From: Chara braunii
Taxonomy: Eukaryota; Plantae; Charophyceae
Length of the DNA stretch: 64,000 nt
Direction of reading: 5' to 3'
NCBI GenBank assembly: GCA_003427395.1
Contig: BFEA01000015.1
Span: 6,283,528 to 6,347,527, forward strand
The position numbers and the translations under genes were made by a program. Every line of letters begins with the position of its first letter. Position 1 is the first letter of the stretch. The notes below the pieces were generated by a model. The model did not search any database. It was given only the letters and a program-made list of their open reading frames with translations, and was not told the DNA's origin. Below are positions 6,093 through 26,860 of the stretch, piece by piece.

Positions 6093-9000
6093 AGTCTTAC
6101 TGTGGAATACTATGAGAAGTTTTGGGCTGAATTGAAGGATCCCCTGTTGGAGTTTTATAACAAGGTGCTAACAGGGGGATAACTGACATCTAGTATGTGT
6201 CACGGGGTTATCACCCTGCTGTTCAAGAAAGGGCGAAGGGATGAAGTAAGGAATTGGCGGTCAATCTCTAGATTGAATGTCTCTTATAAGATACTGGCGA
6301 AAACTCTTGCTAAACGGTTGGCACGGTACTTACCGGACCTGATCTCAAAAGATCAGGCCGCCTTTGTTCGGGGAAGATTCATTTCTGATAACATTGCAAC
6401 GGTTGTGGAGGCGTTAGAGATAATCGAGAAAGAGAACAAGCCGCTGGCGGTACTGTTACTAGACCTGGAGAAGGCTTATGACAGAGTCAACTGGGCCTTC
6501 ACTCTTACGACGCTTCGCCATATGGGGTTTGGTGATTGTTTTTGTCGGTGGATTCTAGCAATGTACACACATTCCACGGCCACAGTAATGGTGAATGGGT
6601 TCTTGTCCGAGCCCTTTGCGTTGACGAGGGCATTAAGACAGGGCTGCCCCTTAGCCCCGTTAATTTTTGTAGTACAGCTGGAAGTTATTCTGTGTAACAT
6701 TAGATGTCGTCCGGAAATTGTGGGGTTGGCAACATCCCGCACTGAGTGTAAGGTAAAAGCATTGGCTGATGACCTCTTCGCCATCTGTGAAAACTCTGAT
6801 ACAGCATTGAACGCCCTCAAAGAACTGTTGGATGAGTAGTCGACCTTCTCAGAAGCGGCTGTGAATTGGAAGAAATCGGTTTTCTTCCTACCACAGTCCA
6901 TGTCAATAGCAGCAGACTGGGGTATGAAGAGGATAGAGAAAGGTGAGGCGGAGAGATTCTTAGGAGTAATGGTGGCCTTGGACAATTGTCAAAACGTGCA
7001 AGAGGATATTATGCAGAACAAGGTAGTGTCCAGAATAACCTCCTGAGGTTCAGCACCACACCTTTCACTCTTCGATAGAGCGTTAGTTGTTAATACTTCA
7101 CTGTTCTCCCTGCTGTGGTATGTAGGGACCATTCGGAGGCCGCGCCCCTCTTTGATTGCTTTCATCCGCAGAGTTGCAGCCCGGTTTATTTGGAAGTCAA
7201 AGGCGGGCAAGGAGGAGGGTCATATGTCCAAAGTTGCATGGGATGCTATCACATGCCCCAGGGATGAGGGGGGTTTGGGATTGGTGGATCCGGAAAGCAG
7301 GAACTGCCTGCTGCTGTCCAAATGGGTGGCCAAAGCGATTAACAGTGAATATGATGATCACTGGATACTTCTGGCGGAACAAATCCTCGCATCGGAATGA
7401 AACTTGAAAAGACCCAGAGATGCTTGGACATGCCTGCAGCTGGATTCCTTTTTAAACCGTAGAGTGCAGTCGAAGTTCTGGGCGGATATCATCTATGCAT
7501 GGAAGAGGGTCAAACCGAATCAATGGGTAGACCCCGTAACTAAGGAAGAGGTACAGAACCAACCGCTATTTGATAACCCCAGAATAAAATACCAGGATGG
7601 ACGCAGCTTCAGGGCCAACAAAGAAACGGGCAGTTTCGGGGACAGCTGGATTCAGAGAGGTGTGTTGAGAATTGGGGATCTGTGGGATGAAGGAACAGGG
7701 TACTGGAAGACCACAGCCCAGATTAGAGAGGAGTTGGAAGGCCTGCATCAAGTGGAAGGAAAGTTGAAGATCTTAATCAAAGTTGTTCCAACAGATTGGA
7801 AGGCCATCCTTCGACCAGATATGGTGAACCCTCCTGGCACATGCTATGTAACAGAGGGCCTCCACGAAGAATCCACGGAGGTGTATTGGAAACTGACTGG
7901 ATATGAGCCAGAAGGCAAAAGACAGTGGCAAGCTTGGAAGAGAGTACAGCATCAGTGTCATCCACTGTTAAGCCTCGATGAGGATTTAGAGGACCCGTGG
8001 ATAGGAGCCAAGCTTGTTCAGGTTCGAGTGGAGGAGCACTGGGAATCTGAGACCAGGCCTGTAGTAACGCTCAGTGTAAATGGCCAGCCTGTAATAAGTC
8101 GTAGGCTAGATCCTGCGGCATGGGCCTGGAGAGGCCTTGGGAGTGGCGGTTCCTCTCTTCCTCTGGGTAATTTTGAGCCCTCAGTCAGAATTTTCATCTC
8201 AAAGAAGCTGGCAGTAGCTGTGGTAACGCAACGATGGGGCTCTATTTTGGACTTGGAAGGAGTGGATATTGTTAACGGGATGCCCAGATTATGGAAGCAA
8301 CTCCTATGCATTCCTTCTCAGAGATGGGCAGCTTTACTCTGGATGTTATCTTGGCTGGTAACCCCATCTGCAGTGTGGTTGGCGAGTAAAGGAATGAGGA
8401 TAAGCCTTTCATGCAGAAGGTGTACCTGGCCGTTCGAATCAACAGCCCACCTGTGGTGGGAATGCCCAGCCTCGATGAGGATCTGGGCCTGGTGGTCAGA
8501 GCATTGGGCCTCCTTCTCCTCACAACGATGGGAGTGGGATATGAAATGGGGACTGTTGGGTCTTCCCCCGGACAATCTGCCCTTGGATCACGGTGCTGGA
8601 TATGTTGCCCAAGTCTGCCGCTCAGTCATCATCTCAGTTATCTGGGAACACAGAAATCGCTCCTGCTTTGAGAAGAGAGGTATGTCAGATATGGAAACAA
8701 AAGCACTTATTAAACACAGGCTGAGCTACCAAATTCAGGTGGATTGGAATCGCACAGGTAGCAAGGGTCAAGGTAGCGGTTTCGAACACTTTATGAACAC
8801 ATGGTGCACAGGCAAGGAAAGATTGGCTTCGGTGGACGAAGAGGGGAAATTGAAATTATGTTCCTGGTTAGCCTAGTTAATTGGTAATCTGTAGGTTAGT
8901 CGACGAGTGTTAGTTCAGCTCTCATGTATGTATGTATGGTTGTGGTCTAATGCTTATAGATTGCTTGGGGTTGGTTTTCTGACTTTTGTTAAATCAGAAT

Positions 9001-22420: not shown

Positions 22421-24978
22421 ATCAAAAGCACTTCAATAGGCCGGTTCATACAAATCACACAGTACACAGTACGTCTGCTGCTATAAGTATGTACGGAAAA
22501 GGAGCCAATTGAATTTCGAAAAAAATGTTCACAAAACATAGATCGATCGAAAGAGAGTTTGACTACAAGGCGTCCACGGAGAGGCCTCAGATTTCAAGAC
22601 TCACCACGTCCCCGACCGTCCCTTCAAAGACCACTCTATATCACCTCCCCCTCTCCCCTCTCCCGTCTCCCCTCTCCCCTCCCCCTCCCGCCCCACCTCC
22701 CCTTCCCTCGCAGCTCCTGCTCCTTCAGAGAGCAAAATATGCCAGCCTCCACTCCTCGTCCCACCTAATGTCAACCCCGATACCACCAAGTCCAATACAC
22801 CAACCCCCTTCCCCTCTCTGCCCCCTTCGTGGGGAAGCAAACCAAGCCAAACCACCAAGTCGTGTTTGCCTGGCAAGCCGTAGGTTGTGTATTCGATTCA
22901 TGGTTTGGACATGCACGAACCCACAGTCGGTTCGATTTGCTTATTGCTTTTTGCTTAACCCCCATCGAACGGCGAGGCGCCAGGTTGTGTTGGCCTGGCA
23001 AGCCGTAGGTTTTCCGTTCGATGCTCGGTTTGGACATACACGAGCCCACAGTCGGTTCGGCTTGCTTCGCTTATCACCCCAATCCATCGCCCGGGATCGA
23101 CACCTAGAAATGAAGAGTGCGGTCGATTGGAACTGGGCCTCGGCTCTGACAGACAACACGGCAGACAATCCACGTGTCAGGCCGACCCCGACCATCTCCT
23201 GATGCCCCGACTGAAACCGCAAGCAAGCACCTACAGCACCTCCATCCGTCCAATGGTGCGGAAAGAACCAAGGACAAGGTAGCTGCCTGCCTACGGCAAC
23301 GCCGCCGTTAGTCCCCTCCCCTACCCCTTCTCCCCGTCACAACCATCCGTGCCAGTCTCTAGACCTAAGCCCATGCCACTAAGGGAACTCGCACCCCGGG
23401 ACTTTTTCGACGGAGCTCTGGACGTGATTCGGGTCAGATGCGGCCAGCTGCGGTCGTAATTGCAATCAGATACATGCCTTGAAGCGACGACATGCTCATG
23501 CTGGCTGATTGGCGCCCATAACATAACGGTTTGTGCCCCTGCAAGAACAACTCGATCGGCTGGCTGACAGTCGTTCTCCGGTAGGACAGCCGCTGTGTCA
23601 TCCTCAGTAATTTCCCATGGTAAAGTAGCTTTTCAAAATATAGGGTCACTCCACTGAGCCCGAATGTTTGGCCGCCGCAGCCGACGGCAACGAGGCAACG
23701 ATGCCATGTCAAACCAATGAATGAATAGCAGCAGTCCTTAGCGAACGGAAGGGAAAGAAAAGAAAAAAGGACAATCTTTGACAGTCGAAAACAAAAAAAA
23801 ATCATCGTCAATTACGCACGCGCGACCGACATCGCTGCGCAACACAGCAGCCAGCCGACTCTGGCGCGTACCAAAAAACAAAATAAAACAATAGATGGAT
23901 GCCAAGCCGCCCACCGCTCTTACCAATCCCCTACAAAGCAAGAAGAGAACCTTCACCTGACCTCATCCTGCCTTACGCCCAAGAAAGACCCCACTCTCAG
24001 CACGTAGTAGACGCCATAAAGACGCCACACACATAGTCACATCAAACACCACCTCCCCCGTCCGCCCCCCCCACTAAAAGTACCCGTTCCCGCGTTGTGG
24101 TACACTGTATTCCGCGCCCAACAATTCCTCCCCCGTTTGCTCCCTCCGCTGTGCAAAAAAGGCGCGACCGCTCCGCCGCCCCTTCGAAAAGGGTGGAGCC
24201 AAGATGTACTACTGACTTGACCATATATTGCATAATCTAATAATAATTTACGAAAAGCCCAATCAGCAAGATTTCAGATTAAAGCGCCTACCAAACCCCA
24301 TCCGTCCAAATCAGCAAACCCCTTCCCTCGCCTCAAACACTACGTGGAGTCCAAAATACACACGACACCTTGCACTACCTACCTCAACCCCGTTCTCCTC
24401 ATCTTGTCCACAACTTACGCGCACGACCAACAACCTTACCACCTCACAAACCACGTCCATGAACAACGGCGTCAACCACTGCGGAGCCGAAGAAACACAC
24501 ACCACAGAGGGCCTCGCTCACCTACTCTCGACATGCACAAAAAGACCACACACATCGCGATATAGCATTTTTCCACGCTCTAGCGGAAGATTCACTCTCG
24601 TTTTGCACGATGCGAGGGCAATGGAGTGAGGCCCATAGTGCATTACATTACTTACCTCAGCATCCGAAATTCTCCACTCATCTTGCCCGCAAAACTTGCC
24701 TGCCTGCATGGCCAAAAAACTTATCATTATCACCCCCCCACAAACCGGTCCGTGAAACAACGCCCCTCAAACACTGTGGAGGGCCAAAATACAGCAGCAG
24801 ATACCATGCATTTTTACCCACTCCTCATGCATTTTTACCCACCACACTTCCGTTTACCTCATCCTCATATCGTCCAAACGACGATTCCATGGCAAGGCCG
24901 GCCCACGACATCACCACTACCATCAATCTCACCAACTTGCCCGCGCGGCGGCTAATCCCTATCACTCCTGAACTGAAT

Positions 24979-25425
24979 TCAAAAGAGAGCGATGAAAGCA
25001 CCCATAGCAAGCGCAAGCTGAAGGGACAAGGGAACAGCCGTCGTGAATGCACTATTGGGCTGGGAGGCGGGAGCCGACGGAGTGGTGGAGCGGGCGGTGG
25101 TCTGCATCTCCCTTCTTCCTCCTCCCAAGCACAGAGTATCAAAGGCGACCGCCTTGTACCCACGCGCTTCCAGGCGGCTGAAGATTTCCTCCTCGCACAC
25201 CACGTTGTCGACCAGTTCATCCAAGTCCGACTGGAAGATGGAATCAAACTGTCGGCAGCAACTCTCCGACGTCATCGCGGAGGGGTTACAAGACGACGTG
25301 AGAGGACTGAAGTCGAAGTTCTCGAAGTTCATCGCGCATGGCCGAACACCACCACCTTCGGTCCTCCCAGCCACAGCACCGACAACAAGAAGGAGGCAAA
25401 GAACGGAGAGCGCTGTCGTCTTCAT
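24979..25425 (-). CDS. Secreted, probably GPI-anchored Cys-rich protein, LORELEI-like (LLG)/SPARK-related
   Basis: Intact 148-aa ATG-to-TGA ORF. It has a signal peptide (MKTTALSVLCLLLVVGAVAG), C-x15-C-x9-CC-x19-C-x21-C with a CxxNFE motif, a Ser/Thr/Pro stalk, a possible omega site (N-S-A) and a hydrophobic tail. Confidence 0.75.
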   Translation of the reverse strand: MKTTALSVLCLLLVVGAVAGRTEGGGVRPCAMNFENFDFSPLTSSCNPSAMTSESCCRQFDSIFQSDLDELVDNVVCEEEIFSRLEARGYKAVAFDTLCLGGGRREMQTTARSTTPSAPASQPNSAFTTAVPLSLQLALAMGAFIALF

Positions 25426-26860
25426 CTTGGCAATCCGAGAGACTCAGCCGCAACAGAGACAACGGGCAAAGACTGACAGACGGCGACAAGCTGGGCTGGA
25501 GACGCACAGCTCAACAGCGTTTGCGTTGACGTTCACTCCCCTGACGGCAGCGACAAAACAAGAAAGAGACAAAGCTGAGCCGACAGTTGGGGTAACAATC
25601 GATCGACGAGGCGTCACGAAAGAAACACCGCAAGCGAAATGAAATGAATCCTCTCAGCTGAGAGCGTCAAACAAGGCGAAAAATGACTATCTTCAGCCAA
25701 GGCACAGGCAAACTACAGTAGTAGAAGTATTCCCGCTCGCAGAAGGCCAAGCACAGGCAAGACCGAGAGGAGGGAAGGACACAGAGCGAGAGAGAGAGAC
25801 AAAGCGCGGTGCATGGAAAGCGGCGCTACACTCTGTAGCGGTATTGGTTACTACCACCACAGAAGAGCACCGCAGCAACAATGCGTTTAGAAAGTCGGGT
25901 TCTCGTTAATATGGCCGCTAGGATCAAGCAGAGTTGTCCCTCACGTGCGCTTCGATTTCGATCGGCATCGAAGACGAAGGCGGCAAGCCGGCCCACAAAC
26001 ACCCCCCCCCCCCCCCCCCCTCTGCCTGTTCCGTGGGACGCGACCCGACCTCTGGCCTGAACGCCGAGCCACGACGTGGCGTGGTGTCTGAAAGCCGACC
26101 AGAGGCGCAACCCGGCCTACGCTCAACGTACTGGAAACGGCCAAAGCAAGGGAAAAAAAAACAAAAAAAAAACAAAAAAAAAAAGCAAGAAAACTTCGCC
26201 GAAGTGGCGAAATGGACGAAGTGGGCAAAGTGGCGGTGGCGGACAACAAAAGGACTGCGTCCGTCTAGATGTCATCGAGCAAGGATAAGGGCATCGCCAC
26301 ACCACTCTCGAAATTTGCAAACAAAATGGGAAGGAACTTCCCGCTAGACCATGGCCAGATGCCCCCGCCACATTTTTGTCTTTTTCACATTTCGAGAGTG
26401 GTGTGGCGAGGCCCTAACACGCATACAAAAAGAAGCAAAAAAAAAAACAAAAAAAAAACAAGGATCACACGCATAATTTTTTTCTTTTTCTCCTTTTATT
26501 TGAACAACGGTAGGCGTAATTTGCAAAATACCCCCATAAGTTGACAACGGGGCGGGGAGGTCAGCAGCCTCGTACCCATCCTTGCAAGAGGGCTTCGACG
26601 AACGGGATGAAGGTTGCCCAAGCTATTCGTCGGGGTGGAAGTCCGCCGCGCGCTATGCCAGCGAAATTTTTTTTTTCTTTGGGCATCGCCACAGCACTCT
26701 CGAAATGTGCAAGATGAGAATGAACTTCCCGCTACAACATGGGCAGATGCGCCCGCCAAATTTTTGTCTTTTTCACATTTCGATTTCGACTGGAGAGTGG
26801 TGTGGCCAGGCCCTTCCGTAGTCGTCCCGCCAGATCCTTCGCCAAACAAAAACTCTTCGC

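Follow-up and report, generated by a model that had tools for sequence, protein, structure and literature searches.

In land plants, RALF-LLG-FERONIA signalling governs growth, immunity and fertilisation, and it has been treated as a land-plant invention (bioRxiv 10.1101/2020.12.23.424085; a 2026 review). A small nuclear gene of the stonewort Chara braunii, a charophyte alga, raises the question of how much of this module is older than that. The gene occupies positions 24979 to 25425, on the minus strand, of the window, that is, the whole 64,000-nucleotide stretch of contig BFEA01000015.1 (assembly GCA_003427395.1) analysed here. An earlier note, made from the letters of the window alone, had read it as a divergent LORELEI-like, glycosylphosphatidylinositol (GPI)-anchored co-receptor of the LLG family and had suggested that, if the host is a charophyte, part of the module predates land plants. 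The new analysis shows that the LLG co-receptor fold is indeed older than land plants. The suggestion therefore stands for the fold, which is present as an LLG1-like family in Chara, but not for the RALF-LLG-CrRLK1L module itself, since no algal RALF has been reported and the presence of CrRLK1L kinases in Chara is disputed.

What does the gene encode? The coding sequence and the parts of its product are arranged as follows.

24979..25425, minus strand: complete single-exon coding sequence of 148 amino acids (aa), from the list of open reading frames (ORFs), with its stop codon at 24979-24981.
25366..25425, minus strand: predicted signal peptide, aa 1-20, MKTTALSVLCLLLVVGAVAG, from hydropathy and small residues at -3/-1.
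25114..25344, minus strand: LLG1-like helical cysteine-rich domain, aa 28-104, from PF26578, PDB sequence matches, AlphaFold, VIA-align and Foldseek.
25057..25113, minus strand: low-complexity Ser/Thr/Pro/Ala linker, aa 105-123, by inspection, with a predicted local distance difference test (pLDDT) score below 50.
24982..25056, minus strand: probable GPI-attachment signal, aa 124-148, from hydropathy and inspection.

The reading frame opens with an ATG in the start context CCAAGATGAAG, and an identical protein is a called gene of the same contig (6.78 Mb) and assembly. Because the frame is the longest on the sense strand of an expressed transcript and has a homolog in Chara vulgaris, it did not simply arise by chance. 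An overlapping plus-strand ORF of 288 aa (24610-25476) was considered and rejected, since the RNA is antisense to that frame.

The translation holds every motif that the earlier note had quoted in describing an intact ORF with a signal peptide, a cysteine core and a GPI-type tail. Specifically, a positively charged n-region (K2) precedes an h-region (aa 5-19) with a mean Kyte-Doolittle hydropathy of 3.0-3.2 and the residues AVA-G around -3/-1, features that make cleavage after A19 or G20 likely. The mature protein carries six cysteines (C30, C46, C56, C57, C77 and C99) in the pattern C30-x15-C46-x9-C56C57, followed by DELVDNVVC77, IFSRLEARGY and TLC99. The tail consists of the small-residue triplet N124-S125-A126, a candidate omega site, a 6-aa spacer and the hydrophobic stretch L133-F148 (16 aa), and the C-terminus, ...PNSAFTTAVPLSLQLALAMGAFIALF, remains hydrophobic to its end, with neither a charged tail nor cytoplasmic residues. 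Triplet, spacer and hydrophobic end together have the customary layout of a GPI-attachment signal. A scan of the 148-aa protein for N-glycosylation sequons returned none. On these sequence features, the product is probably a GPI-anchored surface protein.

To which family does its cysteine-rich domain belong? The precomputed Pfam tables list a PF26578 (LLG1) match at E <=1e-5 for the window protein, and PF26578 matches at the same level are likewise precomputed for the C. vulgaris ortholog and for the C. braunii proteins CBR_g51047 and CBR_g31518. Local Pfam-A scans of the window protein and four relatives returned no match whatsoever at E up to 10; the local copy, which apparently lacks PF26578, is silent on proteins that the precomputed tables file under that family, so that an empty result from it leaves room for Pfam families of recent date. 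Against the PDB, phmmer places Arabidopsis LLG1 (6a5d) first, at E 7.1e-5 over aa 20-135, and the LLG1 string given in the earlier note matches chain 6a5d_A. When five Chara domains are combined into a profile, LLG2 (6a5e) is matched at E 5.7e-6 and LLG1 at E 2.7e-5 across the whole domain, with the six cysteines in register with those of the LLGs and the third-best match reaching only E 0.12.

The predicted fold points in the same direction. With an AlphaFold model built from a five-sequence alignment as the query, the top two Foldseek matches are LLG1, at probability 0.93 and TM 0.61 by target, and LLG2. A VIA-align comparison with 48,161 chains places LLG2 at Z 7.7 (78/84 residues, 2.9 A) and LLG1 at Z 7.5, followed by unrelated helical proteins from Z 5.1. 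The earlier note had named best structural matches to lipid-transfer, prolamin or SPARK proteins as an outcome that would speak against its reading; LLG1 and LLG2 are at the top instead. In ESM language-model features, eight PF26578 clusters are among the best matches, at 0.91-0.92. ESM Atlas shape searches were uninformative and returned only unrelated bacterial models at TM <=0.35. Taken together, Pfam, PDB sequence, fold and embedding all place LLG first, as the earlier note had proposed, and the window protein can with high confidence be regarded as an LLG1-like domain homolog.

How far, then, has it diverged from the canonical family? In the HMMER phmmer and profile alignments, the Chara cysteines correspond to LLG Cys1, 2, 3, 4, 6 and 7, and the C-x15-C-x9-CC spacing is identical to that of LLG1. 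LLG Cys5 (...FAC...) is aligned to Q65, and no cysteine follows C99, where LLG Cys8 has its place. The earlier note had already seen the identical spacing and the lack of Cys5 and Cys8, and this joint absence now extends to all six Chara sequences. In classical eight-cysteine-motif (8CM) proteins, such as the non-specific lipid-transfer proteins (nsLTPs), C5 is paired with C8. From this pairing and the joint absence in Chara, we infer by analogy that LLG Cys5 and Cys8 form one disulfide with each other.

The ND motif and the eight cysteines are considered distinctive of the LLG family (Mecchia et al., bioRxiv 10.1101/2020.12.23.424085). In Chara, the ND motif before Cys6 is missing, its place being taken by V72-D73 in the window protein, by LD in C. 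vulgaris and by GQ, NL or RF in the paralogs. G89 stands opposite the glycine of the LLG ...LYG(K/R)YP... motif in the alignments, and five of the six Chara sequences have this glycine. As such, the window protein is a divergent six-cysteine variant of the known LLG family.

The gene does not stand alone in its genome. The search for paralogs that the earlier note had proposed yields at least five in C. braunii, in addition to one ortholog in C. vulgaris; CBR_g51047, CBR_g31518 and CBR_g50710 came from the profile search and CBR_g50713 from a word search. The host is a charophyte, as the suggestion in the earlier note presupposes, and not a land plant: the protein is called in the C. braunii assembly, and its paralogs, on other records of that assembly, are labelled Chara braunii in NCBI, UniRef and EukProt, a species of the streptophyte class Charophyceae. 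Nearest to the window protein is a transcript of Chara vulgaris (E 1.8e-43, 60-66% identical), whose product retains the frame, the six cysteines, the signal peptide and the tail. Identity between the Chara paralogs amounts to about 25-34%. Nevertheless, the six-cysteine pattern, the leader and the hydrophobic tail are common to all Chara members; a GPI-type tail is kept in C. vulgaris, CBR_g50710 and CBR_g50713, and the linkers of the paralogs are of the same type as that of the window protein, only longer. All five paralogs are single-exon genes, each isolated within its 20-kb surroundings. Two of them bear the automatic UniRef/UniProt name "GPI-anchored protein LLG1-like domain-containing protein".

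A profile search of 1.84 billion representative proteins, together with word-index searches, returned Chara proteins only, with the exception of one bacterial sequence, and the six-cysteine LLG1-like group is a small, Chara-specific one. The exception is P0003, a 1245-aa bacterial repeat protein from an ENA metagenome contig, which matches a two-sequence Chara profile in four stretches at E 1e-8. It repeats a short DQVVCEGDLF-like motif, and the match looks like a chance motif instead of homology.

Some of the annotated gene models deserve a comment of their own. CBR_g50713 (BFEA01000061.1, L005:10001-10492) is annotated as a 10.4-kb spliced model whose odd C-terminus is an assembly-gap artefact; its unspliced frame runs into the same hydrophobic GPI-type tail as that of CBR_g50710 and then into N. 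The two genes are 85-90% identical neighbours, about 84 kb apart, with a ratio of nonsynonymous to synonymous substitution rates (dN/dS) of 0.56 overall, the changes within the domain being too few to interpret. CBR_g51047 (BFEA01000062.1, L003:9875-10000) has no signal peptide as annotated. Counting from an ATG that lies in frame 42 codons upstream, the protein gains a hydrophobic leader and with it a signal peptide, so that translation probably begins before the start given in the annotation.

Is the gene expressed? The answer comes from two stranded oligo-dT RNA-seq runs, with 6-12% of the raw reads sampled from each. The transcript extends beyond the coding sequence on both sides.

25426..25896, minus strand: 5' untranslated region (UTR) of about 470 nt, from the drop in RNA-seq depth and the end of a Logan contig.
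25713-25814, minus strand: upstream ORF of 33 codons, out of frame with the coding sequence, from a scan for upstream ATGs, of which the one at 25814 is the only one.
22746..24978, minus strand: 3' UTR, unspliced and at least 2.2 kb long, from single-orientation depth over 23200-24978 and a contig; the left end, 22746, is approximate, as it derives from the contig reaching 454 nt past 23200.

Read depth is unbroken, at about 20-100, from 23200 to about 25880, and nearly all first mates lie on the plus strand, which under the usual stranded chemistry indicates RNA from the minus strand, the same as that of the ORF. At the right end, a depth of about 40-55 gives way to values below 1 beyond about 25880, and the Logan contig stops at 25896. 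The reads contain no splice joints across the transcript, apart from repeat artefacts at 24605-24608. The gene is thus transcribed from the ORF strand as a single unspliced mRNA of at least 3.1 kb that includes the 447-nt coding sequence, and the possibility, raised in the earlier note, that the ORF is unexpressed transposon cargo is refuted by stranded reads covering the gene. The upstream ORF may influence translation.

The sequence recurs in other public data. Words were sampled from 24600-25900 (the coding sequence and its flanks), and 20 runs from 7 studies, none of them on record as RNA, contain at least 87% of these. A close relative, organism B (run X14), carries the same transcript; it is listed as differing by an additional Leu codon, in frame, within the signal peptide and by seven 3' UTR substitutions. 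Two substitutions are counted over the coding region of the organism B contig, one of them without a located position. All these differences together are too small in number to test for selection. The insertion, AGG at 25390, adds a Leu to the h-region of the signal peptide, and the Chara vulgaris ortholog has the same state.

The surroundings of the gene are rich in repeats, and the following features were located.

6195-6839, plus strand: RVT_1 match (E 2.6e-28), a profile match on an ORF.
7404-8876, plus strand: zf-RVT match, a profile match on an ORF.
24509..24608, no strand assigned: short dispersed hairpin repeat fragment (family D8) within the 3' UTR, from a repeat search, with loose ends and mixed letters over 24520-24608.

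The first two are the remains of a non-LTR (non-long-terminal-repeat) retroelement and confirm the transposon-rich setting among decayed elements that the earlier note had described. The hairpin fragment accounts for the false splice joints at 24605-24608 and for contig breaks in the 3' UTR. Beyond the gene lie two further hairpin repeats resembling miniature inverted-repeat transposable elements, at 26288-26415 and 26678-26812, about 128 nt long with inverted arms of 34-35 nt. RNA reads cover both strands of these two repeats at a depth of 50-100, far over their surroundings. A repeat search for terminal repeats flanking the gene found low-complexity matches only, and the transposon-cargo reading is rejected on this ground.

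The available data are compatible with a model in which this expressed Chara gene gives rise to a secreted, GPI-anchored, LLG1-like surface protein that acts, by analogy, as an adaptor, and on balance we favour this reading, with some reserve. The reserve stems from a series of points that weigh against it. The PF26578 assignment rests on the precomputed tables, the local scan being blank, and the signal peptide and GPI signal were assigned by heuristics of hydropathy and inspection. Land-plant LLGs are only 22-28% identical to the Chara protein. None was found at E 1e-3 in the profile search of the 1.84 billion proteins, nor in word-index searches with the single protein or with the full or core alignment. 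The AlphaFold model is of moderate confidence (mean pLDDT 57.6, about 70-76 in the core). VIA-align Z values below 8, such as the 7.7 for LLG2, may arise by chance for small helical domains, and they carry weight here because the sequence searches name the same family. For the model of the paralog CBR_g50710 (pLDDT 60), the Z of 5.7 for LLG2 against a top Z of 6.2 leaves LLG unseparated from noise.

The partners add a further difficulty. In land plants, LLG first binds RALF by its N-terminal YISY helix and then brings about the assembly of a complex with the kinase, as seen in the LLG2-RALF23-FER structure (PMC7132299). For algae, RALF orthologs are not on record (Mecchia et al., bioRxiv 10.1101/2020.12.23.424085), and the best Chara match to the malectin-like domain of FER lies outside the CrRLK1L tree (bioRxiv 10.1101/2020.12.23.424085). 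The 2026 review describes Chara malectin-like homologs with an extra leucine-rich repeat (LRR) domain and regards CrRLK1Ls as land-plant-specific; other reviews credit Chara with CrRLK1L sequences or with an expansion of CrRLK1Ls. With no RALF reported from algae and with Chara malectin-like kinases placed by two analyses outside the CrRLK1L clade, the canonical partners may be absent. As for the wider significance, many families once deemed land-plant-specific have since been found in streptophyte algae, which limits the weight of one more such case.

How might such a protein work? The predicted N-terminal signal peptide would take the product into the secretory pathway, where the domain homologous to LLG1/LORELEI would fold into a small, all-helical unit held by three disulfides instead of four. 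The hydrophobic tail would then be removed and a GPI anchor joined at about N124, leaving the protein on the outer face of the plasma membrane. There, by analogy with land-plant LLGs, it could serve as an extracellular adaptor tethered to the membrane, with a secreted ligand and/or a receptor-kinase ectodomain as what it binds. A Chara malectin-like-domain kinase might be its partner, and a signalling complex might be assembled at the interface of cell wall and membrane. A receptor-associated adaptor function is a tentative proposal, and we hold it to be somewhat less than an even prospect because the canonical partners are unestablished in Chara.

An evolutionary extension of the adaptor model goes further. 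According to it, the LLG arm would have existed as a GPI-anchored surface adaptor in the ancestor that land plants share with Charophyceae, at a time when RALF and canonical CrRLK1Ls had yet to arise. The six-cysteine form without ND would be ancestral, working with Chara malectin-like or LRR receptor kinases or with an unknown peptide, and the fourth disulfide, tying down the FERONIA-contacting C-terminal loop, would be a later addition in land plants. We regard this scenario as speculative and, in its entirety, improbable.

Could the fold instead be put to a different use? The protein might be a lineage-specific Chara surface or wall protein, for instance a binder of wall polymers or small molecules or a chaperone for surface proteins, which shares its ancestry with the LLGs and has at no time had a RALF-type peptide or a CrRLK1L-type kinase as its partner, the co-receptor role having arisen later, in land plants. 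Such a history would fit the reported absence of RALFs in algae, the argument that CrRLK1Ls are land-plant-specific and the lack of both the ND motif and the Cys5-Cys8 pair in 6/6 Chara sequences, and the divergence of the paralogs suggests lineage-specific roles. However, Chara is rich in receptor kinases with a malectin-like domain, counted by some authors as a CrRLK1L group that has expanded, the groove-forming helices align along the whole LLG2 chain in the VIA-align comparison of the AlphaFold model, and there is no positive evidence for an alternative ligand. We consider this explanation, the principal rival, rather unlikely, though to be taken seriously. The likeness to LLG could also reflect no more than a shared ancient fold, in which case the product would be a GPI-anchored protein of the lipid-transfer type (nsLTP/LTPG, prolamin, 8CM) that binds lipids or wax precursors. 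UniRef does file CBR_g50710 and CBR_g50713 automatically under 'Bifunctional inhibitor/plant lipid transfer protein/seed storage helical domain-containing', and the 2S albumin Ara h 6 appears in the fold search, but only at Z 3.6 and rank 14, with no nsLTP in the top 50 VIA-align matches and LLG2 and LLG1 ahead by more than 2 Z units. Furthermore, five family members have no match to LTP_2, Tryp_alpha_amyl or related Pfam families at E up to 10, and neither phmmer nor the profile search brought up an nsLTP or a 2S albumin from the PDB at E up to 10, the profile search yielding no further protein with an eight-cysteine motif either. The protein has no CXC motif, and its C-x15-C-x9-CC spacing is the same as in LLG1. 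A lipid-transfer role is therefore very unlikely.

It might also be asked whether the ORF encodes a fragment of a SPARK-type ectodomain, the alternative that the earlier note had offered, or whether it is a chance ORF, a decaying retrocopy or transposon cargo without protein function. An intronless gene, alone in a transposon-rich region and with a repeat fragment in its long UTR, could invite such a view, and SPARK is indeed among the distant embedding neighbours. Its similarity of 0.76 is, however, far under the 0.92 of LLG, and no match to PF19160 was found at E up to 10 in the local Pfam scan, whose copy is also blank for PF26578; the SPARK alternative is not upheld. Intronlessness is a trait of the family, as all five paralogs are single-exon, and terminal repeats around the gene are lacking. 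Also against these readings stand the strand-specific expression at moderate depth, the retention of frame, cysteines, signal peptide and tail in Chara vulgaris, and the listed organism B differences, namely the in-frame Leu codon and the 3' UTR substitutions, with one coding-region substitution unplaced. These possibilities are, even jointly, extremely unlikely.

The favoured reading, an LLG1-like surface protein, is in part already known, in that public databases carry automatic LLG1-like labels on Chara proteins; a published discussion was not found. Searchable literature yielded no mention of an LLG/LORELEI homolog in Chara or other streptophyte algae, and the preprint analysing the LLG family is silent on algae. 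The Chara proteins thereby offer a natural three-disulfide variant for asking what role the fold had before RALF and CrRLK1L and which parts of LLG were added for binding FERONIA and RALF.

How does the Chara protein compare with systems that are already understood? The nsLTP/LTPG proteins and 2S albumins likewise have a small, secreted, helical, cysteine-rich domain, and some of them (LTPG) are GPI-anchored; they differ from the Chara protein in their CXC motif, which it lacks, in giving no Pfam or PDB sequence match to it, and in a fold score of Z 3.6 against 7.7 for LLG2. SPARK ectodomains (PF19160) are also extracellular, cysteine-containing plant domains but are longer (318 aa in the cluster representative). 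The closest likeness is to land-plant LORELEI and LLG1-3 (PF26578; 6A5D, 6A5E), which agree with the Chara protein in size and in the succession of signal peptide, helical cysteine-rich domain of about 80 aa, Ser/Pro-rich linker and GPI-type tail. In contrast to the canonical members, with their modified eight-cysteine motif and four possible disulfides, the Chara protein has six cysteines and three possible disulfides; its gene is intronless, and its host is an alga without a reported RALF and with a disputed canonical CrRLK1L. Among the earliest-diverging LLGs in the literature found, MpLRE1 and MpLRE2 of Marchantia polymorpha, MpLRE1 has no GPI site (Mecchia et al., bioRxiv 10.1101/2020.12.23.424085). 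As in Chara, a haploid-dominant streptophyte carries a small LLG family, and that of Marchantia, too, includes a non-canonical member.

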